Assembly (NCBI GenBank): GCA_002269645.1
Contig: NIVC01001464.1
Location: 66,955-130,954 of the forward strand
Reading direction: 5' to 3'
Length of the DNA: 64,000 bases
Source of the DNA: Macrostomum lignano
Lineage: Eukaryota
Under the pieces are notes generated by a model. It searched no databases. It saw only the letters and a list, made by a program, of their open reading frames with translations, and was not told the DNA's origin. Below, piece by piece: positions 15,888-60,352 of this stretch; the stretch's first letter is position 1, and every line of letters begins with the position of its first letter. Position numbers and translations under genes: made by a program.

Positions 15888-17745
<1,858 letters not shown>

Positions 17746-38345: not shown

Positions 38346-38363
38346 TAATTGCAATTTCATGTT

Positions 38364-41300
38364 ATGGCAGCAGCAGTTGCAGAAACAGCATTGGTTCCCA
38401 CTGTGGCCACTCAACAGCAGCCACCAGCAGAAGATACTCAACCAAAAGATGACTCAAATCTGTACTCATCTCGCCTGCCTCGAATGACCAAAGAGGAGCT
38501 CAAGCGAATCTGCAAAGAGCTCAAACTGTACCTGACCCCTCACCTGAATGACATTCTCTATCTGCACTATAAAGGCTATGCTCGCATCGAGAACCTGGAA
38601 GAGTACACCGGCCTCCGCTGCCTCTTCCTCGAGTGCAATGGAATTCGTAAATTAGAAAACCTGGACGCCCAGACAGAGATGCGCTGTCTTTACATGGCAA
38701 AAAATCTGGTTGAACGAATTGAAAATCTTGACTCAATGGTCAACTTGGACACCATCGATTTGAGTCACAATAGTCTGGAACGCATTGAGAACTTGTCTAA
38801 CTTGACTAAACTGACTAAAGTGATTTTGGCTCACAATAAAATCTCCAGCATCGAAGATCTCAAAGGATTGCTGGATTGCCCATCGCTAACCGTGGTTGAT
38901 TTGCAGCACAATAAAATTGAAGATGCTCAAGTTATTGATGAGATCTTTGTTAAGATGCCAAACCTGAGGGTGCTATACCTGCAGGGCAACCCAGTGGTCA
39001 AGCAGGTAAGGATTTTGGTTTATCTTCTTTGACCCATCTATCTGTTTATCGTTCCGCGTGCATCTATATCCCACCCGTCTTCCCAACTCTTCCCATCATC
39101 CAACCCATCCTCCCATTCCCACCCGTCTCCCCATCCTCTCCCATTCCCACCCGTCTCCCCATCCTCTCCCATTCCCACCCGTCTCCCCATCCTCCCATTC
39201 CCACCCGCCCCCCATCCTCCCATTCCCACCCGTCTCCCCATCCTCCCATTCCCACCCGTCTCCCCATCCTCTCATTCCCACCCCATCCTCTCCCATTCCC
39301 ACCGTCCCCCATCCTCCCATTCCCACCCGCCCCCCATCCTCCCATTCCCACCCGCCCCCCCCCCCATCCTCCCATTCCCACCCGCCCCCCCCATCCTCCC
39401 ATTCCCACCCGTCTCCCCATCCTCCCATTCCCACCCGTCTCCCCATCCTCTCCCATTCCCACCCGTCCCCCATCCTCCCATTCCCACCCGTCTCCCCATC
39501 CTCTCCCATTCCCACCCGTCCCCCCATCCTCCCATTCCCACCCGCCCCCATCCTCCCATTCCCACCCGTCTCCCCATCCTCCCATTCCCACCCGTCTCCC
39601 CATCCTCTCCCATTCCCACCCGTCTCCCCATCCATTCCAACTTGTCTCCCCATCCTCTCCCCTTCCCACCCGTCTCCCCATCCATTCCAACTTGTCTCCC
39701 CATCCTCTCCCATTCCCACCCGTCTCCCCATCCATTCCAACTCGTCTCCCCATCCTCCCCCCATTCCCACCCGTCTCCCCATCCATTCCAACTCGTCTCC
39801 CCATCCTCTCCCATTCCCACCCGTCTCCCCATCCATTCCAACTCGTCTCCCCATCCTCCCATTCCCACTCGTTTCCCCATCCTCTCCCATTCCCACCCGT
39901 CTCCCCATCCATTCCAACTCGTCTCCCCATCCTCCCATTCCCACTCGTTTCCCCATCCTCTCCCATTCCCACCCGTCTCCCCATCCTCACATTCCAACTC
40001 ATCTCCCCATCCTCCCATTCCCACTCGTTTCCCCATCCTCTCCCATTCACACCCGTCTCCCCATCCCATTCCAACTCGTCTCCCCATCCTCCCATTACCA
40101 CCCGTCTCCCCATCATCCCATTCCCACCCGTCTCCCCATCCTCTCCCATTCCCACCCGTCTCCCCATCCATTCCAACTCGTCTCCCCATCCTCCCATTCC
40201 AACTCGTCTCCCCATCCTCCCATTCCAACTCGTCTCCCCATCCTCTCCCATTCCCACCCGTCTCCCCATCCTCTCCCATTCCCACCCGTCCCCCCATCCT
40301 CCCATTCCCACCCGTCTCCCCATCCTCTCCCATTCCCACCCGTCTCCCCATCCTCCCATTCCCACCCGTCTCCCCATCCTCTTACAATTTCTTCTTAACC
40401 TCCATCCTACCGGTCTACCCACAGCCTCTCTATCTGTTCCCAAAGAATCATATTTTACCCCCCCTACATATCTACGAGCTAACACCTGAAATCTACCCCA
40501 ACATTTACAGATAAAATTCTACCGCAAGACGCTGACCCACAAGCTGCCCAACCTCACTTACCTGGACGACCGTCCGGTGTTCCCCAACGACAGGCGCTAT
40601 GCTGAGGCCTACTTCTCCGGCGGGGCGGAAGCGGAACGAGCCGAACGGAAACTCGTGCAAGAAGAAGAGCAGCAAAAGACCATGGCTAGCGTGGAGTGGC
40701 TGCTAAGGAAGCGCCAGAAAAATGAAGTGGCCACCGCTCAGGTGGGGGGGACTTAAAACATCCAATCAGGATAATTGTGAAATCCATTTAAAAGTCACTA
40801 AAAAACGTTAAAATGAGAATCATCCCCAAATCTAACCTGAGAATCCTCTAAATCTCACCTGGGAATCGTCCCCAACTATCACCTGAGAATCGTTTTTAAA
40901 TCTCACCTGAAAATCGTCCCCAAATATCACCTGAGAATCGTCCCCAAATCTAACCTGAGAATCGTCTAAATCTAACCTGAGAATCGTCTGAATCTCACCT
41001 GGGAATCGTCCCCAACTAACACCTGAGAATCGTTTTTAAATCTCACCTGAGAATCGTCCCCAAATATCACCTGAGAATCGTCCCCAAATCTAACCTGAGA
41101 ATCGTCTAAATCTAACCTGAGAATCGTCTAAATCTCACCTGGGAATCGTCCCTAACTATCACCTGAGAATCGTCTTTAAATCTCACCTGAGAATCGTCCC
41201 CAAATATCACATGAGAATCGTGTTAAATCTCACCTGAGAATTGTCCCCAACTATCACCTGAGAATCGTCCCCAAATCTCACATGAGAATCGTCCCGAAAT

Positions 41301-42318
41301 CACACCCGAGAATCGTCCCCAAATCTCACCTGAGAATCGTCCCCAAATATCACCTGAGAATCGTCCCCAAATCTAACCTGAGAATCGGCTAAATATAACC
41401 TGAGAATCGTCTAAATCTCACCTGGGAATCGTCCCCAACTAACACCTGAGAATCGTTTTTAAATCTCACCTGAGAATCGTCTCCATATCTCACCTGAGGA
41501 TCGTCCCCAAATCTCACCTGAGTATTGTTCCCAAATCTTACCCGAGGATCGTCCCCAAATCTCACCTGAGTATTGTTCCCAAATCTTACCCGAGGGTCGT
41601 CCCCAAATTTCACCTGAGAATCGTCTCCATATCTCACCTGAGAATCGTCTCCAAATATCACCTGAAAATCGTCTCCAAATCTTACCTTGACAATCGTTCC
41701 CTAATCTCACCTGAGAATCGTCTCTAAATCTCACCTAAGAATCGTTCCTAAATCTACCTTCACCTGTCCTCATTGTACCCTCAGGCAAAGGCGGAGGCTG
41801 CCGCGGTGTCGCGAGGCGAAGACCCCGCCTCCGTGCCTCCCGTGGATCCCGCCAAGTGCGACTGGCTCTACGGCGATCACGTGACCTCCGACACCAACAG
41901 CGATGGCTTCGTTGACGTGATCGAAGCCGACCCACCCACCGGCGATGCCGGAGACGCCGTCGACAACCTGCCAATGATTGCTCCGCGTCAGAATGACGGC
42001 GGTGGAATTTTCTCCTCTGTCGCCAAGGATGCAGAAGAGCCGGCCGCGGATTCCAGCATCCTGTTGCTAGGCAACTCGCAGCCGTCTGAGGACAGGGATG
42101 CCGCTGCGCCCGCTGTGAAGAAATCTCCGCTGATTGTTGAACTGGATGACATTCAGCCGACTGTTGACGAGCAGATCAGCACCACCAAGGAGCCGGCGGC
42201 TGCTCCAGTTGAGAGCAGCTCGACGCTGTCGATGACTGAAATTCGCGACGCTCTCGAGGTGGCGGCGACTGCGGCAACTGAGGCTGCTAAAAGTCAGCTG
42301 GACGATGAGCTGGATTGA
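38364..42318 (+). CDS. DNAAF1: Dynein axonemal assembly factor 1 (LRRC50), 3 exons, ~468 aa
   Basis: Exons 38364-39005, 40511-40741, 41785-42318 (all phase 0). Motifs [44 protein letters not shown]22-type LRRs, LYLQGNPVV and [14 protein letters not shown] match DNAAF1. The exact start ATG is less certain. Confidence 0.95.
39060..40400. repeat. 26/28-bp C-rich minisatellite (CCCATTCCCACCCGTCTCCCCATCCT)n filling DNAAF1 intron 1
   Basis: Seen directly; source of the Pro-rich and Gly/Trp-rich ORFs. Confidence 0.95.
40815..41760. repeat. 24-bp minisatellite (CTCACCTGAGAATCGTCCCCAAAT)n, DNAAF1 intron 2
   Basis: Tandem units; same family as 44318-44960. Confidence 0.95.
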
Positions 42319-42319
42319 T

Positions 42320-42670
42320 TTGTTGATTGACTAATTTATTGATTGATTTACTGATTATCGATTGATTGATTCATTGATTAGTTGATCGATTAATCGATTG
42401 ATTTATTGATTAATTTTAGATTTATTGATTAATTGATTAATTTATTGGTTGATTGATTAATTAATTGATAGACTGAATATGATCGATTGATCGATTGATT
42501 CATTAATTGATTGATCGATCGATATATTGATTAATTAAATTGTTGATTGATTAATTAATTGATCGATCGATTGGTTTATTGATTAAGTGGTTGATTGATT
42601 AATTAATTGATCGATCGATTGATTAATTGATTGACTGATTATGATCTATTGATTGATTGGTTGATTAATT
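42320..42670. repeat. Degenerate (TGAT/TAAT)n low-complexity tract directly after the DNAAF1 stop
   Basis: Seen directly. Confidence 0.85.
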
Positions 42671-43389
42671 TTCTTATTCAAAAGTTATTGATTCAGACTG
42701 TGATTTTTCTGTTTTTTTTTCTAATTTCTGTTATTCCGTCCAAAAATGTGTGTGTGCTTTTTTAATATAAACTATTCGAAAAAAACAAGTGCACTGTTTA
42801 ACTACTGTTCAGGGTGAATTTAAGTAGTACGAGTAGCGCTGGGATTCGCTAAATTTATTATTAATTATAATCGTTTTCTTTACTTTTTTAGTTTACCTAT
42901 ATTGTTTTTGTTTGATGGCAACGTTACAAAATACACTCCAGCTTACTCACAGAGCCCTGGCTCTTTACGACAGGTTAAACAGCGAGTTGCTATCAGTGTT
43001 AGTGTTCTAGTGTGCATATAGCATTGCTTTTTTAGGAATTTAGCGTGGCAATATCAAATAGGTGCATTGTTATTCCCACCTCTACCTTATTTGGTCTCTG
43101 CCATATCTGTGCCCGTCTAGCCCATCTACTTTAACTCCCCATCTACCTCACTTCATCTACCCCACATCCTCATCTACCCCACATCCTCATATATATACCT
43201 CATAGATATACCTCATCTCCCCATCTACCCCACCCTCCTATCCACCCAATCTACCGCACTACCCTCTACCCTACCCTGTTATCTACCATCTTATAAATCG
43301 TTTCCAACATAATGAATTATTAAAGTTTAAAGCCAACCAGCGACTTATAATATTAGCTCAAATGACGCTATCATCCACCCGCTCTATTC

Positions 43390-43968
43390 ATGCATCCCTC
43401 GCTCGTCATCCTAAGCCGCCTGTCCCGGGCGCATCGGCTGCCATCCCGCCAGCCCCTCAGCCAGATTGTCCGCAGCTTCGCCGCCCCGCCTCCCGGAGGC
43501 GCCGCAGGCAAGAAGCTGAAAGGCAAAGGCGTGGCAGCGATTTCAACCAAGAAGGAGCACCCAGTGGAAACCGATGTCAACAAACTGGCTACTCACCTGT
43601 GCATCAACTACTACGTCGACGGAGAGTACATACCATTGAAGCCGAAGGATTCTTACCCAGACTGGCTATTCGAACTCAGCACGGAGATGGAGCCGCGACC
43701 TCTGGAAGATCTCGAGCCAGACTCCGAGATCTACTGGCGTCACGTGATTCAAGCTAAAATGAAAGACGTGTTCAAGCTTGGCAAAATGGATGGCTGGATT
43801 AAACCGGACCATGTTCACGAGACCAACCAGCTGGAGAGGTTCTATGGTGAAACCTATCACGAGGTGCTTAGTCACGAAGCTTCCAAAGTTGGATTGCCAA
43901 CGAAATCTAGCAGCGCTGATCTGCTTGAAACTGCTGATGACAGGGCAGCAATCAAGCGTTTAACCTGA
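43390..43968 (+). CDS. MRPL54: Mitochondrial large-subunit ribosomal protein L54 (mL54), single exon, 192 aa
   Basis: Basic, Arg/Ser-rich presequence-like N-terminus and the mL54 core CINYYVDGEYIPLKPKDSYPDWLFEL...LEDLEPDSEIYWR. Confidence 0.88.
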   Translation: MHPSLVILSRLSRAHRLPSRQPLSQIVRSFAAPPPGGAAGKKLKGKGVAAISTKKEHPVETDVNKLATHLCINYYVDGEYIPLKPKDSYPDWLFELSTEMEPRPLEDLEPDSEIYWRHVIQAKMKDVFKLGKMDGWIKPDHVHETNQLERFYGETYHEVLSHEASKVGLPTKSSSADLLETADDRAAIKRLT

Positions 43969-44317
43969 AACCTGATGCAGTCAGTATCTAACTCACTGAT
44001 ATCTGAAGTAGTCTTTGTTCATTCAATTGTCTGCAAGTATACTGTGCAATTAAAATATAACAGCTTCCAATTACAAGCTTTTGTCATCAATTACTTTTAG
44101 TAGTCCAGTTGTGTTGTAGAACATTATAAATTTTATACACATGATACTACAAATTCTTATCAATTAAAGTCAATGGTATGTTATGCATTGTTTAATTGTT
44201 TAATATAGGTAAATAGCAAAATATGTTTACAAAGTTTTCAGCTTATTTTAATTGATTGTTGCTTCTAATCTATATGATAGTTTACAGAGAAACTTTCCAA
44301 AAAACCCACCTAAAAAT

Positions 44318-44960
44318 CTAAGAAGCATCCCCAGATCTCACCTAAGAATCGCTTTCAAATCTCACATCAGAATCGTCTCCAAATCTCACATGAGTATCGT
44401 CCCCAAATCTCACCTGAGAATCGTCCCCGAATCTCACCTAAGAATTGTCCCCGAATCTCACCTGAGAATCGTCCACAAATCTCACCTGAGAATCGTCCCC
44501 AAACCTCACATGAGAATCGTCGCCAAATCTCACCTAAGAGTCGTCTTTAAATCTTATCTGAGAATCGTCCCCGAATCTCACCTTGAGAATCGTTTACAAA
44601 CCTCACTTGAGAATCGTCCCCAAATCTTACCTGAGAATCGTCCCCAAACCTCACATGAGAATCGTCGCCAAATCTCAACTAAGAGTCGTCTTTAAATCTT
44701 ATCTGAGAATCGTCCCCAAATCTCACCTTGAGAATCGTTTACAAACCTCACTTGAGAATCGTCCCCAAATCTTACCTGAGAATCGTCCCCAAATCTCACC
44801 TGAGAGTCGTCCTTAAATCTCACCTGAGAATCGTCCCCAAATCTCACCTGAGAATCGTCGCTAAACCTCACCTTAGAATCGTTCCCGGACATCAACTGAG
44901 AATCGTCTATAGGTCTCAACTGAGAATCGTCCTCAAGTCTTGCCTGGGAATCGTCCGTAA
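44318..44960. repeat. 24-bp minisatellite (CTCACCTGAGAATCGTCCCCAAAT)n in the MRPL54-NUDT14 spacer
   Basis: Same consensus as the DNAAF1 intron 2 array. Confidence 0.92.
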
Positions 44961-45069
44961 CGTAGTTTTATGCTAGAAATATTCTCTGAAACTATTTTAA
45001 ACTACTCAAATCTTTCAGGTCAGCAAACAAAATAAGCTCGTCAATTAGGTCAAGAACGAAAGGTTTAAA

Positions 45070-45765
45070 ATGTCTTCAGACTCGGCACCGAAGCAGTTAT
45101 TAACAAAGTTTGTCGTGTCCCCGCTGACCGGACCGTCGCCCTACATCAAGCCCTACTGCGTTGAATTTGTGCTTGACGGTGTCAATCGCAAGTGGCACTG
45201 CATGCGCAACCATGATGCAGTGGTGATCATTGTGTACAACACAGATCGCAAAGCTCTAGTGTTAGTTCGCCAATTCAGACCAGCAACTTACTTGCAACGC
45301 TGTCTAGAGACTAACGGTGGCAATCTGGAGTCCTTAATGTCAGTTGAGACTGCTCCGCCTTTGCCAGCAGAAGCTGGCGATGTACTGGAAGCCTGCGCTG
45401 GCATCGTTGACAAACCCGACAAGAGCCTAGCAGAAATTGCCGCGGAAGAAGTGCTGGAAGAGTGTGGCTATCGAGTTGAACCGGATAAACTTGAACTGGT
45501 TGGCTGCTGTCGGTCTGGTGTCGGGGTGTCTTCTGCCAAGCAGACAATCTACTATGCTGAGGTGTCAGATTCTGTGCGAGTCAGCGAAGGCGGTGGAAAC
45601 GCTGCCGAAGGTGAACGCATTGAAGTTGTACACTGGCCTGTTGACCAGATCGATGAACTGCTGCTTGGAAATGGCGGTGGCACCAGCGGTAGTTGTAATG
45701 AAATTTACATTGGTCTGCAATTCTGCCTTCTCTGGTTCAAGGTTAACAAGATGCAGTCTTCGTAG
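45070..45765 (+). CDS. NUDT14: Nudix hydrolase, UDP-glucose pyrophosphatase, single exon, 231 aa
   Basis: SPYIKP, HDAVVIIVYN, LVLVRQFRPATY, Nudix box EACAGIVDKPDKSLAEIAAEEVLEECGY and GGGNAAEGERIEVVH match NUDT14. Confidence 0.9.
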   Translation: MSSDSAPKQLLTKFVVSPLTGPSPYIKPYCVEFVLDGVNRKWHCMRNHDAVVIIVYNTDRKALVLVRQFRPATYLQRCLETNGGNLESLMSVETAPPLPAEAGDVLEACAGIVDKPDKSLAEIAAEEVLEECGYRVEPDKLELVGCCRSGVGVSSAKQTIYYAEVSDSVRVSEGGGNAAEGERIEVVHWPVDQIDELLLGNGGGTSGSCNEIYIGLQFCLLWFKVNKMQSS

Positions 45766-45944
45766 CCGCCAACGTTTTTAATATAGGCTGTTAAACTGCT
45801 ATTGTTTTGCAATTTGTTTATTTTTCTGTTTAAAAGTAAATTTAGACTTTAAAAAAATTTTCTTTAGCCAAATGCCACGTAAACTTTGCAATTTGTACTT
45901 TTCGGATAAAATTTTTTGGGATTAGAATTTCATTTCAGGGACTT

Positions 45945-46775
45945 AGGATTCTTATTAGGCATCAGGGATTCTCCTTTGTTGAAGAGGGATTCTCCCTGGG
46001 CATCTGGGATTCTCCATTGTTAGTGAGGGATTCTCCCTAGGTATCTGGGATTCTCCATTGTTAGTGAGGGATTATCCGTGGGTATCTGGGATTCAAGATT
46101 ATTAATGAGGGGTTCTCCCTGGGTATCTGGGATTCGTCCTGGGTATCTGGAATTCCCTCGTGGTATCTAGGATTCCCGTTGGAAATCTGGGACTCCCTTG
46201 GTTATTTGGGATTCCCCTTGAGTATTCGGGAGTTAGCTTGGGTATCTGGGATTTCCCCTGAGTATCTGGGATTCCCCCTGGGTATCTGGCATTCCTCGTG
46301 GGTATCTGTTATTCCCCTTGGGTATCTGGGATTTCTCTTGTGTTTAGTGGGATTCCTCTTGGGTATCTGGGATTCTCTTCGATATAGTGGGATTCCTCTT
46401 GGGTATCTGGGATTCTCTTCGATATAGTGGGATTCCTCTTGGGTATCTGGGATTCTCTTGGATATAGTGGGATTCCTCTTGGGTATCTGGGATTCTCTTC
46501 GATATAGTGGGATTCCTCTTGGGTATCTGGGATTCTCTTGGATATAGTGGGATTCCTCTTGGTATCTGGGATTCTCTTGGATATAGTGGGATTCCTCTTG
46601 GGTATCTGGGATTCCCCTTGGGTACCTGAGATTCACCTTGGGTAAAGTGGGATTCCACTTGGTATCTAGGATTCTCTTAGGTATAGTGGAATTCCCTTGG
46701 GTATCTGGGATTCCTCTTGGGTATAGTAGGAATCCTTTTGGTTATCTGGGATTTCCCTTGGGTATCTGTGATTCT
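45945..46775. repeat. 20/21-bp minisatellite (GGGTATCTGGGATTCCTCTT)n with 41-bp dimer units, NUDT14-TTC21B spacer
   Basis: Seen directly. Confidence 0.9.
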
Positions 46776-46804
46776 CTAATTTCTCTAATTTTCTGTCTCC
46801 TTAG
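46762..46804 (+). promoter_or_regulatory. Strong 3' splice acceptor upstream of the TTC21B ATG (candidate trans-splice site)
   Basis: CTAAT branch-like motifs at 46776 and 46785, polypyrimidine tract TTTTCTGTCTCCTT, and AG at 46803-46804. No upstream coding exon. Confidence 0.55.
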
Positions 46805-46869
46805 GGATCATAAATAATTCATACATATCCCCTACTGGTTGCTGCTCTCCCAGCAACCGGACAGCAACC

Positions 46870-49800
46870 ATGTCCGAAGCGGATCGCGAGTTCTTCTCCC
46901 TGGCATTCTATTATTTCCGCGAGCGCTACTGGCGTCACGTGATCACAGCCTGCCAGGACGCCGGCAGGCGATACGGACCGGCCGACCCGCTGGTGAAGCT
47001 GTGGGAGTCCTGCGCCCTGATAGAGGAGGACCGGGTGCAGGAGGCCCTGCGGGAGTTGGAGAGCCTGAGGTCCAAGCCGGATATGAATGTGGCCGCCCTG
47101 CTGTCCATGGCTCACGCGCACCGGAAGTCGCGTCAGCCGGATCTGCAGGCCATCAAGGAATGCGAGTCGGCCATGAGAGAGGAGAGAAAGCGAGCCGGGG
47201 AGAGAGGTCTGCTGTATGGCGGGCTGGTTGTGGTGCTGCAGGACCGACACGACAAGGCTAAGGAGTACATTGACCGGCTGCTCAAGATGAGCCCCGGATG
47301 TGTGAGTAAAATCGCAGCTGAACTGTACATGATCCCTCAATTTACATGTACATGCTCCTTAAGAATTTACAATCCCTAAGAATGTGCAATCTATAATAAT
47401 CCGTATGAGTCCCTGATGATACATGATCCCTAGGAATATGTAATGCCTGAGAATGCATCATCCTTAAGATTACATAATCCTTAAGAGTACATGATCCTTC
47501 AGAGTACATGATCCTTAAGAGTACATGATCCCTCAGAATACATAATCCCTCAGAGTACATGATTTCTCAGAATACATAATCCTTTAGAGTACATGATCCC
47601 TCAAAATACATGATCCTTCAGAGTACATGATCCTTAAGAGTACATGATCTTTAAGAATACATAATTCCTCAGAATGCATGATGCCTAGGAGTGCGAGAAC
47701 ATAATCCCTAAGAATGCATGATCATGATTCCCTAGAATACGATCCCTAAGATCCTCATTCGCACATTAATCCCGAAATCACAGGTAACCACAAATTATCC
47801 CTAAATCACACACCTGATCCCCATTCGCACCGCCCAGGTGGAAGGCCAGGCACTGCGGGGCTGGGCGGACCTGCACTCAAAAGACGAGGCTGTGCGCAAA
47901 TCTGCAGGCGCCAGCTTCGACAAGGCTGTAGAAGCCAGCAACGGCCGGTTCCCGGATGCCCTGCTGGGCAAAGCGAAGAGCTTGGAGGCGCGCAGAAATT
48001 TCAGCGCCGCACTCGAGGTGGTGAATCAGCTGATTGTGGCTTTCCCGAGATTCCTGCCTGGACTGATCGAGAAAATGCGAGTGCAGTTGGAACTGCAAGA
48101 CTGGGACCAGATGCTGGATACCGCATCCAGGTGCCTGGACTCCGATCCCAGCTGCATTCCTGCTATGGAGTTCCAGCTGCTAAACTTGCTCTGCAGGGAG
48201 GGGAGCTATACTCAGGTGAGCGCGTTTGGGAGAACTAGAATTTCCTTGTTGTTTTTACGGTTTAAGTATTTTCCTGTCGTTTTGGGGAATCTTGGGATTT
48301 CCCTGTAGTTGGGAATCTTGGGATTTCCCTGTAGTTTAGGAATCTTGGGATTTCCTGTAGTTTAGGAATCTTGGGATTTCCATGTAATTTAGGAATCTTA
48401 GGATTTCCATGTAGTTTAGGAGTTTTGGGATTTCCCTGACGTTTAGAAATCTTGGGGTTTCCATTTAGTTTGTGAATCTTGGGATTTCCCTGTAGTTTTG
48501 GAATCTTGGGTTTTTCATGTAGTTTAGGAATCTTGGGATTTCCCTGTAGTTTAGGAATCTTGGGATTTCCCTGTAGTTTTGGAATCTTGGGTTTTTCATG
48601 TAGTTTAGGAATCTTAGGATTTCCCTGTAGTTTAGGAATCTTGGGATTTCCCTGTAGTTTAGGAATCTTGGGATTTCCCTGTAGTTTAGGAATCTTGGGA
48701 TTTACCTGTAGTTTAGGAATCTTGGGATTTACCTGTAGTTTAGGAATCTTGGAATTTCCCTGTAGTTTAGGAATCTTGTTGGGATTTCCCTGTAGTTTAG
48801 GAATCTTGGGATTTCCCTGTAGTTTAGGAATATTGGGATTTCCATGTAGTTTAGGAATCTTAGGATTTCTATGTAGTTTAGGAATATTGGAATTCCCCTG
48901 TAGTTTAGGAATCTTGGGATTTCCCTGTAGTTTAGGAATCTTGTTGGGATTTCCCTGTAGTTTAGGAATCTTGGGATTTCCCTGTTGTTTGGGACTCTTG
49001 GGATTTCCATGTAGTTTAGGAATCTTGGGATTTCCTTGTAGTTTGCGAGTCTTGAAACATCCCTGATGTTTGGGAATCTTAGAATTCCCCTGTAGTTTGA
49101 GAGTCTTGGGGTTTCCCTATAGTTTAGGACTCTTGGGATTCCCCTGTTGTTTGGGACTCTTGGGATTTCCCTGTATTTTAGGAATTTTGGAATTTTACAT
49201 AAAGTTTGCGAATCTTGAAACATCCCTGCCGTTTGGGAATCCTAAAATTTCCCTGTAGTTTGAGAAGCTTGGGATTTCCCTGTAGTTTGAGAATCTTGGG
49301 AATTCCCTGTAGTTTGGGAATCTTATGATTTCTCTATTTTGAGGGAATCTTGGGATTTCCATGTAGTTTGGGAATCTTAGTATATCCCTGTAGTTTTGAT
49401 AATCTTGGGATTCCCATGTAGTTTGTGAAGGTTGGGATTTCTGTGTAGTCTAGGAATCTTGGAGTTCCACTGTAGTTTGGGAATCTTGGGATTTCCCTGT
49501 CTGGCAGTGTTATAGTTCAGGTCAATTGCTTATTATGAAGCATTGGTGCAAAGACTCGTAATTTCAAAGCATTATATAATAAGTTTGTTATCAATTCCAA
49601 TCAGGCCACATCCTCAGTAAGCGATCTGCTGCAGGCCATGGACCGATACGAGCCCAAGAATGTCTATCAGTACTCTCGACTGGCAAGCCTGTTCTCCAGA
49701 GTGGTGAGGGATTCTGAAGCCAAGTTTTTGTGTGTTTTGATTTGTTTAGTAGTTTATATTATGCCAATTAAAATCATTTTTCAGGTGCCGCCCAATAGTC

Positions 49801-51399
49801 TTGTAAATATTTTTGTCAATAAAAATCTGTTTTTTTATTTGAACTCGCAATTTTTTGTATTTGCTTTTTTGACAATCTTCCAATCTTCTATTATTTTTGC
49901 TGATTAATTTTTGTTTGATAAATTTTATTGCTTCCATCTTGTTAAAGTGACCTGCTTTAATTTAAACTATCCTGTTTAGTGCGGTTAACTAAACCCTATT
50001 AAAATCCGCCCCCGCGAAGTTGAAACCCTCCGTAAACCCACCCTGAAAAACCTCTATAAATCCGCCAATCCGCCCCTGTCGCTATCCATAAATCCGCCCC
50101 TATCACTATCCATAAATCCGCCCCTGTCACTATCCATAAATCCGCCCCTGTCACTATCCATAAATCCGCCCCTATCACTATCCATAAATCCGCCCCTGTC
50201 ACTATCCATAAATCCGCCCTATCACTATTCATAAATCCGCCCTGTCACTATCCATTAATCCGCCCCTATCACTATCCATAAATCCGCCCCTGTCACCTCA
50301 TCCATAAATCCGCTCCTATCACTATCCATAAATCCGCCCCTGTCACTATCCATAAATCCGCCCCTATCACTATCCATAAATCCGCCCCTATCACTATCCA
50401 TAAATCCACCCCTATCACTATCCATAAATCCGCCCCTGTCACCTCATTCAGAAATCCGCCCCTATCACTATCCATAAATCCGCCCCTGTCACTATCCATA
50501 AATCCGCCCCTATCACTATCCATAAATCCGCCCCTGTCACTATCCATAAATCCACCCCTGTCACTATTCATAAATCCGCCCCTGTCACCTCATTCATAAA
50601 TCCGCCCCTATCACTATCCATAAATCCGCCCCTATCACTATTCATAAATCCGCCCCTATCACTATTCATAAATCCGCCCCTGTCACTATCCATAAATCTG
50701 CCCCTGTCACTATCCATAAATCCGCCCCTATCACTATCCATAAATCCGCCCCTATCATAGTTTAGAAACAATTTCTATTCACTGTTTAAAAAATCAGCCC
50801 CTCTATCCGCCCCCCTCCCAGGCGATCCGCCAGCCCACCATCCTGCAGCAGACTGGCTACCTTCAGGAGCGAGCCCTGGCCCTGGACAAGGACAACGCGG
50901 AGCAAATCACCCGCATGGGTCACCAGCTGCTCATGCAGGCCAAAGTTCGCGATGCTATCAAAACATTTCGCCGGGCTCTGGACCAGGATGAGAGCAGTGT
51001 GACCGCCCTGCAGGGCATAATCCGCTGCCAGCTGGCTGAAGACCTGCTGCAGGAGGCCGCCTCTCAGCTGGACTTCCTCAAAGAAGTTCAGAGCAGCCTG
51101 GGATCGACCGGGGTAAGTGGAGATTTCCATTCGCGATTCTAAAATTGCTTTTGAGTTTTCGCGTGCTCAGTTCGCTTTGATTGATTGACAAAATTTTCTC
51201 GTGTCGATTTCGCTGTTCGAACAGGATTCGAGCAAGGCGGATGAAGCGGTAACTGGATGCTGGCTGGCGATTTTTTGATGCCAGATTGATATTTTATTTT
51301 TGTTTCTTTTCCTCAATTGCGTGTCTTCTGCTTTTTTGTTGGGCAGCTCTAACTGCTTCTGTCTGTTTGTCTTTCTGTCTGTCTGTCTGCCTGCCTGCC

Positions 51400-51448
<49 letters not shown>

Positions 51449-54400
51449 GCCTGCCTGTCTGTCTGTCTGTCTGTCTGCCTGTCTGTCTGTCTGTCTGTCT
51501 GTCTGCCTGTGTGTCTATCCGCCTCTATCTCCTTACTAACTGTGAACTGTCAGTTGCACAGAAGCATTCAGCAAGTGTCACACACTTTCATTAGCAAAAT
51601 CATTCGACTCATAATATAACTTTTATTCAACGACAATTTTGCTTATTTACTGAGAATTTTTTCATGCTTTGATGTTGTTTGGTGCTTTATTAAAATATAA
51701 AGTACATGTTGAATGCGGTGCAACTACTTATAGTAGCTTGCCTTTTTGCCTCTGCTTCTTGTGATTGTCAGTGGAACTTCAGTGTCACGTGAGACATTTT
51801 CATAAGTAATTTCCTCTTTTTTAAGTAATACTGTTAAGATTTTTATTAACTAAATTAAGAAAAAATATTTGAATGCAATTTTTATTGACTAATACTTGTA
51901 AAGAATAACCAACTACAGCTTCTGTTATTACGTGTTTACTCAAATTTCAGGACTCAGTCGCAAAGGTAATTATAGACAGAAAAATGCTCGTTTTAATCAG
52001 GTTGGGGGTCCTTGAAAAAGTGTTGTCTTCCTTGAGAGCGCTTACATAAATAAATCATTTGCACAGTATATGTGTATTTTTCTACATCTTGTAGTACATT
52101 GTGTCCTGTTGCTTTTGTCTCTGTCAGCCTGTGTCTTCTTCCAGGTAGATAATATTGCTATGTAAACTATCATAGAATTTGAAGTCTTTTTTGAAATTAT
52201 TATGCCAGCCTGTGATCTATCATCATCTATGTTTCTCTTTTATAATTCTTAATTGTGTCATATTTTTACTAAATTACTTTAATTTTATACTCTAATTCTA
52301 TTTTTAAATACTTTGTTATTTTTTAAGGATCTGAGCTTTCTATTGGCTGTGCTGGCTAGAAAGCGAGGTGCTCCGCCTAATAAAATGCTGGCTCACCTGG
52401 ATGATGCAATTCAGCAGCATTTTGCCAGCTTCAAGGTGAGGCTTTAAATTTTAGAATGTACAGTCGCTGTTGAGAATTCCCTGGATTTATAAGTGCACAT
52501 AAGCAGTATTCCCTTGAATTTCCCAGTGTACTCGTACATTATAGGAATTCCCTGGGATTTCCCAGTGTACATTATAGGGATTTCCTTGGATTTCCCAGTG
52601 TACATTATAGGAATTCCCTAGGATTTCCCTGTGTAAAGTTTAGGGATTCCACCACAGGATTTCCGGGTGTACGATATATGGGATTCCCTGGGACTTCAAA
52701 GTTGACAGTTATAAGAATTCCCTAGATTTCCCAGGGGAATTTCCCTGTATACAGTAGGGATTCTAGTGCGGAATTGCAGTGCGGAAATTAGCGTCAATTA
52801 GTCTTTTTAGGTCGTCATCAATTTTTTTATTTTACAGTCCCCTACTTGACATCCCCACCTGCAGGGCCTGGCTCTCGGCCCGGACTACTATCACTCTCTC
52901 AACCCGGACTTCCTCATCCAACTGGTGCACGAGTATCTGGTCCACGCGCCTCAGAAGCCGTCAGCAGCTGGTGGCGGTCAAGTGATCGATCCGGTTCTGC
53001 GCCGGTGCACCCAACTGCTGGACCCGCTGACCAGAGCAATGCCCGGCCTGCTGGAGGCTCTGTACCAGATGGCCAAGATCCGCTACCTGCTGGGCGACAA
53101 TGAGTCAGCTCTGGCCAAGCTGGAGACTTGCATCGACAATGACCCGGCGTTCAGTGCCGCATTCCTGTTGAAAGCCCAGATCCTGGTGCACCAGGGTAAC
53201 CTGAGACTTGCCGAGCAGGCACTGGACAATGCACTGAGTCACAATTTCGAAGTTCGAGAGTCGCCTCTGTATCATCTGACATTGGCCAGGGTGTTGAAAG
53301 GCCAGAAACGGCTTGATGAAGCTATCCAGAGTCTGCAAGCCGCTGTTAAACTGATTAGCAGTGCTCAGCAGGTAAACTAAATGAGAATATGTGGTACTAT
53401 TTAGCGTGAATGTAGCAGTAGTATAAGTGACTATTGGCAGAGATCTCTGCTCAGTTCATGTGTACTTACAGGGAATTCCCTAGCTTTCATGCGTACACTA
53501 AGGAAATTCTCTACATTTATCTGAACAGTTGGGCACAGTTGGGGAATCCCTCAGAGTCATGTACAGATAGGGTATCCAATTAGATTCATGTATTTATGTA
53601 CAGTAAAGGAATTCCCTAGATCCCAATGTACAGTGAGGGAATTCCCTTAGATTCAAATTTACAGTGAGGCAATTCCCTTAGATTCAACTGTACAGTGAGG
53701 GGACCCCATTAGATCCAAATGTACAGTAAGGGAATTCCCTAGCTTCAAATATACGGCGAGGGAATTTCCTTAGATTCAAATGTACAGTGGCAGAATTCCC
53801 TTAGATTCAAATGTACAGTGGGGCAATTCCCTTAGATTCAAATGTACAGTGGGGCAATTCCCTTAGATTCAAATGTACAGTAGCAGAATTCCCTTAGATT
53901 CAAATGTACAGTGAGGGAAAACTCTAGATTCACATATGCGGTGGGGAATTCCCTAAAGTAAAGTTTACAGTAAAGGAATTCCTTAGATTTAAATGTACAG
54001 TGAGGGAATTCCCTTAGATTCAAATGTACAGTGAGGGAATTCCCTATAAATTCAAATATACATCAAAGGAATTCCTTAGCTACGCAATTAACCCCAGATT
54101 TTCCAGACTCCACTCAAGCATCATCATACCTATCTTAAATAAAATATCTCGCACCACTAGGCGGCCGCTAAGAAGGGCGCTCAGCAACAGCAGCAGCAGC
54201 AGTCGCAGCAATCTCAACAGATGACCAGCGCCGATAGACTCAGCGTCTACTTAGAGCTCGCCGAGGTGTACCGCCTCGCCGATCGGCCTCACGAAGCCAC
54301 CAAAGTGCTGCAAGATGCTCAGAACGATTTCGCTGGCAGTCCTGAGGAGGTCCGCGTCACCATCAGCAACGCTGACTTGGCCCTGCAGCGAGGCGACATT

Positions 54401-57400
54401 GAGATGGCGCTGGGCACCCTGCGGACCGTCACGCCTGACCAGGCCTACTTCACCGAGGCCAGGAAACGGATGGCTGATATCTACCTGCAGCATCGCAAGG
54501 TGCGCGTTTGATTGTCTGGAATCTTGTCAGACTTGTCTGGAATCTTGTCAGACTTATCTGGAATCTTGTCAGACTTATCTGGAATCTTGTCAGACTTGTC
54601 TGGAATCTTGTCAGACTTATCTGGAATCTTGTCAGACTTGTCTGGAATCTTGTCAGACTTGTCTGGAATCTTGTCTGACTTATCTGGAATCTTGTCTGAC
54701 TTATCTGGAATCTTGTCAGACTTATCTGGAATCTTGTCTGACTTATTTGGAATCTAGTCAGACTTATCTAGAATCTTTTCAGCCTTATCTAGAATCTTGT
54801 CAGACGTATCTAGAATCTTGTCAGACTTTAAGGTATCTAGAATACATATATGGAATCTTGTAAGACTTATCTGGAATTTCGTCAGGCTTTTCTTGAATCT
54901 TGTCAGACTTGTCTGGAATCTTGTCAGACTTATCTGGAATCTTGTCAGACTTGTCTGGAATCTTGTCTGACTTATCTGGAATCTTGTCAGACTTATCTGG
55001 AATCTTGTCAGACTTGTCTGGAATCTTGTCAGACTTATCTGGAATCTTGTCAGACTTGTCTGGAATCTTGTCAGACTTGTCTGGAATCTTGTCTGACTTA
55101 TCTGGAATCTTGTCTGACTTATCTGGAATCTTGTCAGACTTATCTGGAATCTTGTCTGACTTATTTGGAATCTAGTCAGACTTATCTAGAATCTTTTCAG
55201 CCTTATCTAGAATCTTGTCAGACGTATCTAGAATCTTGTCAGACTTTAAGGTATCTAGAATACATATATGGAATCTTGTAAGACTTATCTGGAATTTCGT
55301 CAGGCTTTTCTTGAATCTTGTCAGACCTAACTTTAAATATGGTTAAACTTATCTGGAATCTTGTCAGACATATTAAAAATCTCGTCAGACTTATCTGGAA
55401 TCTTGTCATGCTTGTATGAAATCTTGTCAGAATTTTTTGGGATATTGTCAGTCTTTTCTGGAATCTTGTCAGACTTATCTAGAATCTTGTCAGACTTATC
55501 TAGAATCTTGTCAGACTTATCTAGAATCTTGTCAGACTTATCTAGAATCTTGTCAGACTCATCTAGAATCTTGTCAGACTTATCTAGAATCTTGTCAGAC
55601 TTATCTAGAATCTTGTCAGACTTATCTAGAATCTTGTCAGACTTATCTAGAATCTTGTCAGACTTATCTAGAATCTTGCCAGACTTATCTAGAATCTTGT
55701 CAGAACTAATTGAAATCTTGTCAGACTTATTTTAATATTGTCAAACTTATTTAGAATATTGTCAGACTTTTCTCAAATATCGTCAGACTTATTTAGAATC
55801 TTGTCAGACTTATCTAGAATCTTGTTAGACTTATCTAGAATCTTGTCAGACTTATCTAGAATCTTGTCTACCCCATCATGACCCCGCCAGGACAAGCGCC
55901 TGTACGCCGCGTGCTACCGCGAGCTGGCTGAGAAGATGCAGACCCCGGAGACCGACCTGCTGCTTGCAGACGCCTACATGGCCATCCAGGAGCCCGAGAA
56001 GGCCATCGAAATCTACGAGAGCGTGCTCAAGCGGAACAGCCGAGACGCAGCTTTGGCCACAAAGATGGGCCAGGCTCTGGTGAAATGCCACAGCTACAAG
56101 AAAGCCGTCACCTACTATGAGCACGCGCTCAAATCTGGTCAGACTTTTTTAAGATTCGATCTTGCTCAACTGCTGCTCAGGCTGAAGCAGTACGATAAGG
56201 CTGAGAAGACTCTGGCCCCTGCTGAGGAGACCAGTTCCGAGGATCCGGTGCTTGCCGCCAAGCTGCTGCATCTCAGATCTCAGGTCTTTGTTCAGCAGGG
56301 TCGAACTCAGGAAGCCGCCGAGGCGCTCAACTCGGCCAAGACTCTGCTCACCAAAGCGCTGCGCCGGGGCGTTGAGAATGCCGATGAGGAGCAGGTGAGG
56401 CTGAAGATGGGGGAGAATTTCGGGTCCGATTCTGAAAAGCAAGGAAAGCCTATTCTGAATTTTTAACGACTCAAGCGCGTCACGTCAGTTTGTAAAGTCG
56501 TCCAAGAATGGTTTTGTTGGCGCTTAACTTTCGATAGAGATGCGACTCAAATTCATATCTAGCGACGCAGATGTACTTTAAACACTACTCATTGTCTGCA
56601 GCGATTCTAGCACGCCTCAGATACGACACTGACGACTTCTGCCCCATTGTCGCAGTAAATAAAACGCTTCAAAATTGACTTTGAGGCTAAATTAGAATCT
56701 CGGCTTGGCTCTGCTCGTGCAATTAACGGCCTTGATGGCCAACCCCCAAGGCGCAGTGAAGTGTACATGTCTAACGATAATATAAAGTTAGGGCCGCTGT
56801 ACACTCCTGTGTGAGTGTGTGCCTGCGCGTTTGACTGCTCAGGGGAGTCGGCGGAATGGGCAGCAATGCCTCTCGCCGGTTGTGTGACAATGTCGCTTAT
56901 AAAGTGCACCAGACTGCACACAGCCTCCTGCCTTTGAGTCTAACAAAGTCCACTCATGCCCCATCCCGCAGCTCCGGCAGCTGAAGGAGCGAATCCATCT
57001 GGAGGCAGCCCGACTGGCCAGGGACCGGGCAGACCTGGACTCCGCCAAGCAGCTGTACGCTGATGCCGGGCCCACAGGCGGCCTGGAGCTGGTGCGCCTG
57101 CTGATGTCTCAGGACGATTTGGACACCGCGCAGCAGCATGCGATGCGGCTGGTGGCGAAAAATCCTGAAGATGATCAGGCGGTGTTCCTCCTGGCTGAGC
57201 TGCTGTGCCAGCAGGGAGACCTGCAGCAAGCCGCCTATCACTACAGGTTGGTGATGCACAAGGTTCACAAAATCCCTAAATCCCCGGATTCACAAAATAA
57301 TCCCTAAATCCCTAGATTCACAAAAATCCCCAAATGCCCAGATTCACAAAAATCCCTAAATCCCCAGATTCACAAAAATCCCTAAATGCCCAGATTCACA

Positions 57401-58044
57401 AAAATCCCTAAATCCCCAGATTCACAAAAATCCCTAAATCCCCAGATTCACAAAAATCCCTAAATGCCCATATTCACAAAAAATCCCTAAATCCCCAGAT
57501 TCACAAAAATCCCTAAATCTCTAGATTCACAAAATATCCCTAAATCCCCACAATCACAATAATCCACAAATCCTCAAATTCCCAGATTCACAAAAATCCC
57601 TAAATCTCCATATTCACAATTATGCCGTCGCAGGCAGCTGCTGGAGTCCCGGCCGGACAACTACCCGGCCGTTGCCCGCCTCATCGACGTGCTGCGCCGT
57701 CTCGGCCGCCTCGAAGAAGCCGCCCCTTTCGTCCTCGCCCAGTCTGCGCGCGCCCGTGTCGATGGCGGCTTCTGCTACTGCCGCGGCCTCTACGAGTGGC
57801 ACTGCGGCAACGCTGGCGAGGCGCTGCGTCAGCTGAACCGGGCCCGGCTGGACTCTGACTTCCAGCAGGAGGCCGTGTTCTGCATGGTGGAGATCTGCAT
57901 CAATCCCGATAACAACACGCTGGGAGGGGAGCTGTTCGACTCCGGGTGAGCTGGGGGAGACAGCTGTCTGTCTGTCTGCCTGTCTGTCTGTCTGTCTGTC
58001 TGCCTGTCTGTCTGTCTGTCTGTCTGTCTGCCTGCCTGCCTGCC

Positions 58045-58077
<33 letters not shown>

Positions 58078-58107
58078 GCCTGTCTGTCTGTCTGTCTGTC
58101 TGCCTGC

Positions 58108-58138
<31 letters not shown>

Positions 58139-58224
58139 CCTGCCTGCCTGTCTGTCTGTCTGTCTGTCTGCCTGCCTGCCTGTCTGTCTGTCTGCCTGTC
58201 TGCCTGTCTGTCTGTCTGTCTGCC

Positions 58225-58285
<61 letters not shown>

Positions 58286-58336
58286 GTCTATCTGCTATCT
58301 ATCTATCTGTCTATCTATCTATCTATCTGTCTATCA

Positions 58337-58376
<40 letters not shown>

Positions 58377-58377
58377 G

Positions 58378-58418
<41 letters not shown>

Positions 58419-58419
58419 A

Positions 58420-58456
<37 letters not shown>

Positions 58457-58484
58457 GTCTATCTATCTATCTATCTGTCTATCA

Positions 58485-58576
<92 letters not shown>

Positions 58577-60352
58577 GTCTATCTATCTATCCATCTATCC
58601 ATCTATCTAATCTATCTATTCTAACCCCCAGCGACATGCCAGCCGGAGACGCAGAGTCCATGGGGCTGCGCACGGCGGAGCGCCTGCTGCACGAGTTGAA
58701 GCCCCGGAGCGGCCCGGGCGGCAACGCTGCTCGCCTTCGCGTGGAATACCTCAAAGCGATGGTGCTGGTGGCAGGCAAGCAGAAGGCAGGCGCTGACAAG
58801 GCCGTCCAGATCTTCAACCAGATGCTGAGCCAAGACAAACTGTACGTACCGGCCATCTACGGCCTGGCGGCAGCGCACATGGTGGCCAAGAACAGCGCCA
58901 AAGCTCGCAGCACACTGAAGCCGCTGGTCACGGTCACTTGGTCGCTTGAGTTTGCCGACGAGCTGGAGAAAGGCTGGCTGCTGCTGGCCGATATGAGCGT
59001 CCAGTCTGGCGGGAGCCGGTCCGAAGGCGCCCAGGAGCTGCTGGCCAAGGTTCTGCAGCACAACAAGGCCTGCTACAAGGCCTACGAGTATTTGGGATTT
59101 CTAATGGAGAAGGAGCAGAACTACAAGGATGCGGCTAGGAATTATGAGCTGGCTTGGAGATATTCAAATCAGACTAATCCGGCCATCGGATTCAAGCTGG
59201 CGTTCAACTATTTGAAGTCTAAGAAACTCGTGGAGGCTGTGGACATCTGCCACGTGGTGAGTTGCCGCCCTGCGGCTGCTGCGGGATAGGGGGAGATGCC
59301 GGTGCAGAGGGTTGAGGGACAAGTGGAGAAGGTAGGTTCGGAGGGTGTGGAGGGTAGAGTAGGAGGGTGTGGAGGGTAGGGTCGGAGGGTGTGAAGGGTA
59401 GAGTCGGAGGGTGAGGAGGGTAGAGTCGGAGGGTTTGGAGGGTAGGGTAGGAGGGTGTGGAGGGTAAGGTAGGAGGGTGTGGAGGGTAAGGTAGGAGGGT
59501 GTTGAGGGTAAGGTAGGAGGGTGTGGAGGGTAGAATCGGGGAGGGTGTGGAGGGTAAGGTAGGAGGGTGTGGAGGGTAAGGTAGGAGGGTGTGGAGGGTA
59601 GAATCGGGGAGAGTGTGGAGGGTAGAATCGGGGAGGGTGTGGAGGGTAGAGTCAGGGAGGGTGTGGAGGGTAGAGTCGGAGAGGGTGTGGAGGGTAGAGT
59701 CGGGGAGGGTGTGGAGGGTAGAGTCAGGGAGGGTGTGGAGGTAGAGTCAGGGAGGGTGTGGAGGGTAGAGTTGGAGAGGGTGTGGAGGGTAGAGTCGGTG
59801 GTATGGAGGGTAGGGTAGGAGGGTGTGGAGGGTAGAGTCGGGGAGGGTGTGGATGGTAGAGTTGGGGAGGGGGAGGATCAGAAGGGTAGAGTCAGGGAGG
59901 GTGTGGAGGGTAGAGTCGGGGAGGGTGTGGAGGGTAGAGTCGGGGAGGGTGCGAAGGGTAGAGTCGGAGAGGGTGCGGAGGGTAGAGTCGGGGAGGGTGC
60001 GAAGGGTAGAGTCGGAGAGGGTGCGGAGGGTAGAGTCGGGGAGGGTGTGGAGGGTAGAGTCGGAGAGGGTGTGGAGGGTAGAGTCGGAGAGGGTGTGGAG
60101 GGTAGAGTCGGAGAGGGTGTGGAGGGTAGAGTCAGGGAGGGTGTGGAGGGTAGAGTCGGAGAGGGTGTGGAGGGTAGAGTCGGTGGGTGACTCGGAGGAC
60201 ATGGATGGTGTGGAGGGTCCAAATCTACTCAAACTAACTAACCTATAAAACCTGTTTCTGCTCCCCCACCGCAGGTACTCAAGAACCACCCGACTTATCC
60301 GAAGATCAAGAAGGAAATTCTTGACAAAGCCAGACAGCAGATCCGAGCTTGA
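46870..60352 (+). CDS. TTC21B: Tetratricopeptide repeat protein 21B / IFT139 (IFT-A), 12 exons, 1315 aa
   Basis: Exons 46870-47301, 47838-48215, 49605-49703, 50822-51112, 52328-52435, 52865-53371, 54161-54499, 55891-56394, 56972-57246, 57634-57945, 58632-59256, 60275-60352. All GT-AG, phases consistent, 3948 nt. Motifs [44 protein letters not shown] and [16 protein letters not shown]. Confidence 0.95.
47325..47760. repeat. 17/18-bp minisatellite (GAGTACATGATCCTTCA)n, TTC21B intron 1
   Basis: Seen directly. Confidence 0.85.
48285..49500. repeat. 27-bp minisatellite (GGAATCTTGGGATTTCCCTGTAGTTTA)n, TTC21B intron 2
   Basis: Source of the [12 protein letters not shown]. Confidence 0.95.
50050..50760. 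repeat. 24-bp minisatellite (TCACTATCCATAAATCCGCCCCTG)n, TTC21B intron 3
   Basis: Seen directly. Confidence 0.95.
51355..51510. repeat. (CTGT)n microsatellite, TTC21B intron 4
   Basis: Seen directly. Confidence 0.9.
52470..52780. repeat. Degenerate ~33-bp tandem with GGAATTCCC/GGATTTCCC and TGTACA cores, TTC21B intron 5
   Basis: Seen directly; units are diverged. Confidence 0.7.
53465..54080. repeat. 31-bp minisatellite (GGGAATTCCCTTAGATTCAAATGTACAGTGA)n, TTC21B intron 6
   Basis: Seen directly. Confidence 0.9.
54510..55868. repeat. 21-bp minisatellite (TTGTCAGACTTATCTGGAATC)n with a ~418-bp higher-order duplication, TTC21B intron 7
   Basis: A unique variant block recurs at 54783 and 55201. 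Confidence 0.95.
56685..56940 (+). mobile_element. 5'-truncated SINE copy in TTC21B intron 8
   Basis: High identity to 10260-10540 (GGCTAAATT.GAATCTC.GCTTGGCTCTGCTCGTGCAATTAACGGCCTTGA...). Confidence 0.85.
57262..57620. repeat. 26-bp minisatellite (CCCCAGATTCACAAAAATCCCTAAAT)n, TTC21B intron 9
   Basis: Seen directly. Confidence 0.92.
57962..58620. repeat. Compound microsatellite (CTGT)n then (CTAT)n, TTC21B intron 10
   Basis: Seen directly. Confidence 0.95.
59330..60220. repeat. 24-bp G-rich minisatellite (GGGTGTGGAGGGTAGAGTCGGAGA)n, TTC21B intron 11
   Basis: Seen directly. Confidence 0.95.

Follow-up and report, generated by a model that had tools for sequence, protein, structure and literature searches.

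A 64-kb stretch of the Macrostomum lignano genome (the window; contig NIVC01001464.1) carries four genes, DNAAF1, mL54 (MRPL54), NUDT14 and TTC21B, arranged head to tail on the + strand. Comparison of the homeologous copies of this locus indicates that all four are very probably trans-spliced to the spliced leader (SL), at exon starts 38362, 43393, 45019 and 46845, where short tracts of the SL tail appear to have overwritten the genomic acceptors. That the four genes form one polycistronic precursor is a more cautious proposal, which we consider moderately likely. All coordinates are positions within the window unless a homeolog is named.

As a recent polyploid, M. lignano is represented in the assembly by two further copies of the locus, L002 on NIVC01001448.1 and L003 on NIVC01002868.1. 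The NUDT14-like protein encoded at 45070-45765 has a residue-for-residue match on contig NIVC01001464.1 of GCA_002269645.1, where the 20.7 kb around NUDT14 correspond to window positions 35070-55765 with no difference, and the close relatives of the window proteins are ‘BOX15_Mlig...’ proteins of this free-living flatworm; the window belongs to the published Mlig_3_7 assembly (Wudarski et al. 2017, PMC5730564). Proteins of the locus were matched only on genome contigs of GCA_002269645.1, no RNA-derived contig being found, and the locus is not individually described in the M. lignano operon literature examined.

The 200 nt upstream of each start were aligned across the three copies, whose flanks are 92-99% identical. 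M. lignano has a single 35-nt SL, CGGTCTCTTACTGCGAAGACTCAATTTATTGCATG, which ends in AUG (Ustyantsev & Berezikov 2021, PMC8629364), and the four candidate acceptors read as follows:

38356..38361, + strand: DNAAF1 SL acceptor, TTCATG in the window, replacing a presumed original TTTCAG (TTTTCAG if the T before it is counted); TTTCTG in the homeologs.
43387..43392, + strand: mL54 SL acceptor, TTCATG in the window, TTCCTG in L002 and an intact TTCCAG in L003.
45011..45018, + strand: NUDT14 SL acceptor, TCTTTCAG, intact in the window and L002; TCTTTCTG in L003.
46839..46844, + strand: TTC21B SL acceptor, TTGCTG in the window, TTGATG in L002 and, in L003, TGCATG, which is all 6 nt of the SL tail.

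Every changed base at these sites is the matching base of the SL tail (...TGCATG). Before 38362 the window reads TTTCATG and L002 and L003 read TTTTCTG, between flanks that are 99% identical, the window having the SL-tail C, A and T at positions -4, -3 and -2 and the other two copies only that at -2. Before 45019, TTTCAG in the window and L002 stands against TTTCTG in L003, and a longer view of the sequence before 46845 gives GGTTGCTG for the window, GGTTGATG for L002 and GGTGCATG for L003. The bases overwritten in the window are 38358-38360, 43390-43391 and 46843. Across sites and copies the replacements are nested outward from -2, taking in -2 alone, -2 and -3, or as much as -2 to -5. Variable columns make up eight of the 20 at positions -2 to -6 of the four sites, compared with 3-4% of 9,196-11,318 aligned non-repeat columns (Fisher p 5e-8 to 6e-7 for enrichment at the four first-exon boundaries), and the AG dinucleotide is kept in three of 12 copies of the 5'-terminal acceptors, as against 23 of 23 copies of the internal acceptors of DNAAF1 and TTC21B (p 3e-6).

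The inferred originals, TTTTCAG, TTCCAG, TTTCAG and TTGCAG, all fit the M. lignano acceptor motif [T/C]TNCAG (PMC8629364). Because YTNCAG occurs at a frequency of 1.6 per kb on the + strand, one ‘orphan acceptor’ in each 1.1-kb spacer is expected by chance, and it is the differences between copies that carry the argument. The hexamer TGCATG is found 33 times in the window where 41.5 occurrences are expected and, since this count is not above expectation, the footprints are invisible from one copy alone; the SL sequence itself has no match in the window with up to three mismatches allowed.

An initial annotation of the window, made from that single copy, had proposed a trans-spliced operon of these four genes and placed an orphan acceptor just before the downstream start codons. 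Its NUDT14 acceptor at 45011-45018 was right. For TTC21B it had chosen 46804 or 46853, and the acceptor indicated here is instead 46843-46844; the candidate at 46804 reads GG in L003 and has no SL-like change. To these can be added the mL54 acceptor at 43391-43392, which it had left unnamed, and that of DNAAF1, which would itself be trans-spliced at 38361/38362, two bases before its ATG. Its expectation that the cluster genes are SL trans-spliced agrees both with the SL biology of M. lignano (PMC8629364) and with the footprints at the four first exons. Between the TTC21B acceptor and its ATG, L003 (~11686-11700) has one copy fewer than the window of the 11-bp direct repeat CAGCAACCGGA (46854-46864 in the window).

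The gene models that bear on co-transcription are the following:

38362..42318, + strand: DNAAF1, exon 1 from 38362, ATG 38364, stop 42316-42318.
43393..43968, + strand: mL54 (MRPL54), a single coding exon, with a genomic ATG at 43390 in the window copy.
45019..45765, + strand: NUDT14, a single exon, ATG 45070, stop 45763-45765.
46845..60352, + strand: TTC21B (IFT139), ATG 46870, stop 60350-60352.

DNAAF1 (GenBank locus tag BOX15_Mlig005143g2) encodes 468 aa in three exons, with boundaries at ~39005, 40511-40741 and 41785-42318, and is identified by LRR_4, LRR_8 and LRR_9 domains and the UniRef name ‘Dynein axonemal assembly factor 1 homolog’. mL54 matches the human mitoribosomal mL54 chain 3j9m_l (PDB) with E 8e-14, its Pfam match being sub-threshold only; NUDT14 is 42-45% identical to animal NUDT14; and TTC21B, with at least 13 exons and tandem arrays in most introns, is recognised by Pfam ARM_TT21 domains and TTC21B homologues. 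GenBank calls only these four genes in 38364-60352 of the contig, every one of them on the + strand, and the spacers contain no convincing minus-strand open reading frame (ORF), so that the genes adjoin on one strand without an opposite-strand gene between them, as the operon definition used for M. lignano asks. The upstream neighbours, a receptor-like kinase at ~22.6-25 kb and an ORF at 34518-35042, lie on the minus strand, which makes DNAAF1 the first gene. Downstream, a gene with a WSC domain has its ATG at 61950, beyond a TTC21B-WSC spacer of 1.6 kb that contains no array and is of another kind than spacers 1-3; the initial annotation had suggested that the polycistron might extend to this gene.

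The spacers and the signals around them are made up as follows:

42259..42260, + strand: cryptic GT donor in the last DNAAF1 exon (GAG/GTGGCG), used by chimeric ML2 models.
42313-42670, + strand: (GATT)n array in the DNAAF1 3' untranslated region (UTR), spacer 1.
42319..43392, + strand: spacer 1, 1074 nt, 658 of them non-repeat; 1687 and 1563 nt in the homeologs.
42764-42771, + strand: candidate poly(A) signals AATATA/TATAAA of DNAAF1.
43153-43216, + strand: short C/T-rich array in spacer 1, which also holds an intercistronic region or outron.
44049..44054, + strand: ATTAAA, the likely mL54 poly(A) signal, kept in all three copies.
44321..44956, + strand: tandem array of the 24-bp unit AGAATCGTCCCCAAATCTCACCTG, 26 copies, spacer 2.
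45835..45840, + strand: AGTAAA, the likely NUDT14 poly(A) signal, followed by an A7 run at 45857-45863.
45956..46774, + strand: tandem array of the ~20-bp unit GGGATTCCCCTTGGGTATCT, spacer 3.

Recomputation returned the stop-to-ATG gaps of 1071, 1101 and 1104 bp reported in the initial annotation, and its gene order and identities were confirmed; each gap does contain a tandem array, and ATTAAA at 44049-44054, AGTAAA at 45835-45840, TCTTTCAG at 45011-45018 and the CTAAT...AG stretch at 46776-46804 stand exactly where it had placed them. The near-identity of the spacers, which it had treated as a feature, is not kept in the homeologs, where the gaps are 1684, 1147 and 1083 bp (L002) and 1560, 802 and 1006 bp (L003). 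The non-repeat length from stop to acceptor, obtained by subtracting TRF (Tandem Repeats Finder) arrays and still including 3' UTRs and any transposable elements, is by comparison nearly constant, at 658, 414 and 260 nt in the window, 635, 414 and 249 nt in L002 and 652, 334 and 304 nt in L003. The near-equal 1.1-kb gaps thus appear to be a coincidence of array copy number in the window copy. All nine repeat-adjusted distances are below 1000 bp, and subtraction of assumed 3' UTRs as well leaves ~170-550 nt of non-repeat sequence per spacer. Raw distances between an assumed poly(A) site and the acceptor that follows it are ~600-990 nt. At ~17 nt after the NUDT14 AGTAAA, the window and L002 have AAAAAAA and L003 (~10790-10810) has TACATAAATAAAATA, a difference that may be either a genuine indel or a footprint left by poly(A) tails during polishing.

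Tandem arrays take up 39-76% of spacers 1-3, 1% of the 9.5-kb upstream region and none of the TTC21B-WSC spacer; they also account for 30% of the whole window and, through introns, 57% of the DNAAF1 span and 47% of the TTC21B span, and with gene spans and window so rich in arrays they are not special to the spacers. The 24-bp satellite AGAATCGTCCCCAAATCTCACCTG of spacer 2 also fills DNAAF1 intron 2 (40814-41759) in the same orientation, the two arrays being ~80% alike.

With these elements, a long pre-mRNA would start from a single promoter upstream of 38.36 kb, in the AT-rich DNA that is all but free of arrays. This precursor would be cut by cleavage and polyadenylation after each coding region (with ATTAAA at 44049 and AGTAAA at 45835 as two of the signals) and would receive the 35-nt SL at the next acceptor, yielding monocistronic mRNAs, that of mL54 with a start codon supplied by the SL. 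On this scheme the ~1-kb spacers would be short intercistronic regions swollen by tandem arrays, a known pattern of M. lignano operons. In its favour, all four genes appear to be trans-spliced and are co-oriented, with the upstream neighbours on the other strand; the repeat-adjusted distances of 658, 414 and 260 nt are under the published 1-kb threshold; and spacers 1-3 are array-rich like the introns and unlike the flanking intergenic regions. Furthermore, older, independent ML2 gene models (UniRef A0A1I8G661 and A0A1I8J7K7) fuse DNAAF1 to mL54 (...RDALE/HPSLV..., the slash marking the junction) by joining the GT at 42259 to 43393. The two chimeras, P0129 and P0128, are each 613 aa long, and represent two homeologs, P0129 being identical to the window copy (449/449 and 164/164 residues) and the other to L002; chimeric gene models in flatworms have been taken as a sign of polycistronic pre-mRNA (PMC12582326).

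A number of observations weigh against this proposal. Trans-splicing alone does not imply co-transcription, because only ~40% of trans-spliced M. lignano genes, 10,458 genes, are in operons (PMC8629364). The raw spacers of ~1 kb are some ten times classical operon distances, and a compact promoter could fit within their 260-658 nt of unique sequence. Two cilia genes and a mitochondrial ribosomal gene make no obvious regulatory unit. The ML2 chimeras may be ab initio merges and not transcript-based. At the level of the junctions themselves, the GenBank TTC21B coding sequence (CDS) of the window copy begins at 46846, with the first codon that is in frame beyond 46845, yet GenBank places the TTC21B start at ATG-24 in the window and at ATG-21 and ATG+9 in the other two copies, so that in both homeologs it lies off the inferred junction; these starts were not used as evidence.

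Much of this would be accommodated if all four genes were trans-spliced but each, or some, had its own promoter in the preceding spacer, the cluster then consisting of co-oriented monocistrons or smaller operons whose acceptors would remove private outrons. Such an arrangement agrees with the ~60% of trans-spliced M. lignano genes that are not in operons (PMC8629364), with a raw distance of ~1 kb that is long for an operon, with the unrelated gene functions, and with the 260-658 nt of non-repeat sequence per spacer, an amount kept in three homeologs. It sits less well with repeat-adjusted distances that fall in the short mode assigned to operons by the published study, with the DNAAF1::mL54 chimeric models in two homeologs, and with spacers that share the array-rich character of introns and not that of the flanking intergenic DNA. 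RFX X-box motifs, which would be a sign of separate cilia-gene promoters, are absent from 38-61 kb, and their total in the window is at chance level. Separate promoters are, in our view, a real possibility but rather an unlikely one, and the single polycistron remains the reading that we favour, with the reserve stated above.

What wrote the SL tail into the acceptors bears on how the footprints may be used. Mlig_3_7 was polished by Pilon with STAR-mapped RNA-seq reads (PMC5730564), and the transcriptome mapping of the same study used STAR with --alignEndsType EndToEnd and up to 1000 multimaps (PMC5730564), settings that the polishing step presumably shared. Reads starting in the last bases of the SL and aligned end to end would put mismatches just upstream of the acceptor, which Pilon would write into the assembly, whilst multimapping would spread the effect across homeologs. 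A nested, junction-anchored pattern is what end-to-end RNA-seq polishing predicts, and the footprints likely stem from it and so mark SL junctions. No paper describing such an artefact was found in our literature search; the overwriting probably affects the whole Mlig_3_7 assembly.

Elsewhere in the window, a minus-strand gene (a 289-aa ORF with TPR, ATG 17742) is preceded at 17740-17748 by cttaaTGCATG/GATTCT, possibly another overwritten acceptor with an SL-supplied AUG, to judge from the 6-nt match to the SL tail. A weaker SL-tail case, aaaCATG/CAATTC, is seen at the minus-strand ORF starting at 35042.

The consequences of overwriting are clearest at mL54. GenBank annotates its CDS as 5'-partial, with 43393 as the precise first base in the window and the corresponding base in L002, which is what would follow from an annotation pipeline that trimmed the transcript at an SL peak. 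In L002 and L003 mL54 is without a genomic start codon, CTG and CAG respectively standing in that position, and an in-frame stop lies 10 codons upstream; the upstream sequence of L003, with the CAG acceptor intact, reads ...K*RYHPPALFQ/HPSLV.... The SL AUG is in frame with mL54 and, joined to the exon, encodes the complete protein of 192 aa, whose N-terminus resembles a presequence, so that mL54 corresponds, on its sequence alone, to an SL-AUG-initiated ORF (slORF). The genomic ATG at 43390-43392 of the window copy is therefore very probably a polishing artefact, the SL AUG being the real initiator. Among the four genes only mL54 is in frame with the SL AUG. For NUDT14 it begins an upstream ORF of 10 codons that is closed before the ATG is reached, and for DNAAF1 and TTC21B it opens out-of-frame ORFs of 42 and 139 codons (the latter at 46845-47261) that overlap the main starts.

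The acceptor-to-SL-tail substitutions could instead be real germline differences, arising for example by gene conversion with reverse-transcribed trans-spliced mRNA, in which case the affected copies (the window mL54 and all copies of DNAAF1 and TTC21B) would have lost the acceptor and would no longer be trans-spliced there. The changes are, after all, present in the deposited sequence, the window mL54 has an in-frame genomic ATG exactly at the position of the SL AUG, and an earlier ML2 ‘SL RNA’ sequence is placed, in Mlig_3_7, at the 5' end of a protein-coding gene that is trans-spliced (PMC8629364). If true, recurrent short-tract conversion might give genes a genomic copy of the SL AUG, as in the window mL54, and end their dependence on trans-splicing. 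However, at least seven independent short conversions would be needed at four sites within 9 kb of recently diverged copies, no replacement is longer than 5 nt of the 35-nt SL, and polishing with end-to-end mapping predicts exactly the nested pattern. In addition, the ML2 models use the mL54 acceptor in the same two copies that read TG in Mlig_3_7 and, if these chimeras are assumed to have a canonical acceptor, the underlying DNA would read AG at the mL54 junction. We regard germline conversion as very improbable. Less credible still is the view that these are conventional genes, the acceptor-like motifs and copy differences being due to chance, for although motif matches alone are expected with YTNCAG at 1.6 per kb, variable columns are enriched at four sites and all changed toward the SL tail (p <1e-6), two copies of mL54 are without a genomic start codon, and the GenBank partial CDS begins at the junction.

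Further observations concern the surroundings of the cluster. Several different arrays, in spacer 3 and in TTC21B introns (45956-46774, 48286-49500, 52534-52734 and 53596-54062), share near-palindromic cores, GGGATTCCC or GGAATTCCC. Upstream, 28800-38361 is a 9.5-kb AT-rich block (GC 30%) that is almost free of arrays, lies between the minus-strand genes and DNAAF1 and is the likely site of the promoter, the array-rich genic DNA on either side having a GC content of 42-53%. A dispersed repeat of ~250-320 bp occurs at 60866-61190 (+), 56680-56898 (-) and 10205-10505 (-), with a degenerate copy at 38198-38344 (+) that is directly upstream of the DNAAF1 acceptor; one of the others is in the TTC21B-WSC spacer. 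Upstream of the WSC gene, 61285-61367 and 61799-61812 hold a short ORF or exon (MDSIGESK...), with GCATG before it and a GT donor at its end, and a one-mismatch X-box-like palindrome, GTCGCCTTGGCAAC; both are at chance level on present evidence.

As a candidate operon the locus is an ordinary example of a type already described genome-wide for M. lignano, and it adds little, repeat-inflated spacers being a known genome-wide feature. The footprints are of wider use, in that they would mark SL junctions to the base without RNA data. The apparent SL-tail overwriting is equally worth knowing for users of Mlig_3_7: with AG acceptors erased and genomic ATGs that are false, motif statistics can go astray, as can the annotation of start codons and any reading of this assembly from sequence only. 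The acceptor motif is present at 9,551 of 21,754 M. lignano trans-splice sites (PMC8629364), and we infer that overwritten acceptors may partly explain why it is found at only this number.

Among known systems, the locus differs from the SL2-type operons of C. elegans. On the operon reading the two would share a polycistron in which 3' end formation is coupled with the addition of an SL to release the single mRNAs, and genes that are often functionally unrelated, but C. elegans has a specialised downstream SL2 and distances of ~100 nt, in contrast to the single SL and ~1-kb raw spacers of M. lignano, and the defining features of the SL2 type are not found here. Nor does the locus resemble the Ciona or SL1-type arrangement, in which the poly(A) site abuts the acceptor, as the signals at 44049 and 45835 are ~960-1000 nt upstream of the next acceptor. 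Parasitic flatworms (Schistosoma mansoni and cestodes; PMC12582326) offer a further comparison in their operons. There, as proposed here, one type of SL serves both monocistronic and operon genes, intercistronic sequence separates the poly(A) site from the SL acceptor, the same acceptors can be used in cis- and trans-splicing, and polycistronic precursors give rise to chimeric models; the difference is that intercistronic distances are much shorter, with a median of 99 bp in S. mansoni and a threshold of 300 bp, set beside ~100 nt in C. elegans (PMC12582326). The neighbourhood of NUDT14 is not conserved in the cestode Anoplocephala perfoliata, where its neighbours differ. For mL54 the parallel is with the SL-AUG frames of flatworms, the SL AUG being a known initiator there according to Cheng et al. 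2006, as cited in PMC9851317; in two homeologs mL54 likewise lacks a start and has the SL AUG directly before codon 2, and it departs from these only in the genomic ATG of the window copy, probably a polishing artefact.

The closest counterpart is provided by the operons of M. lignano itself. In this species 30% of genes are trans-spliced and 15% are in operons of two to nine genes, the intergenic regions of which are rich in repeats, with repeat-adjusted distances that peak near 100 bp and a threshold of 1 kb (PMC8629364); ‘transcriptional units’ coding for at least two proteins and containing several trans-splice sites had been noted before (Wudarski et al. 2017, PMC5730564). The locus shares with these operons the species and assembly, a single strand, the single SL, the acceptor motif, repeat-swollen spacers with adjusted distances below 1 kb, and a size of four genes that falls in the published range, and it differs in nothing essential. 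Its first gene appears to be trans-spliced, which is not unusual given that ~18% of operon genes are in operons whose leading gene is not trans-spliced (PMC8629364). Trans-splicing of the downstream genes is indicated indirectly, by the footprints at 43393, 45019 and 46845 together with that at 38362, and on this basis the cluster would satisfy the published operational definition of an M. lignano operon.

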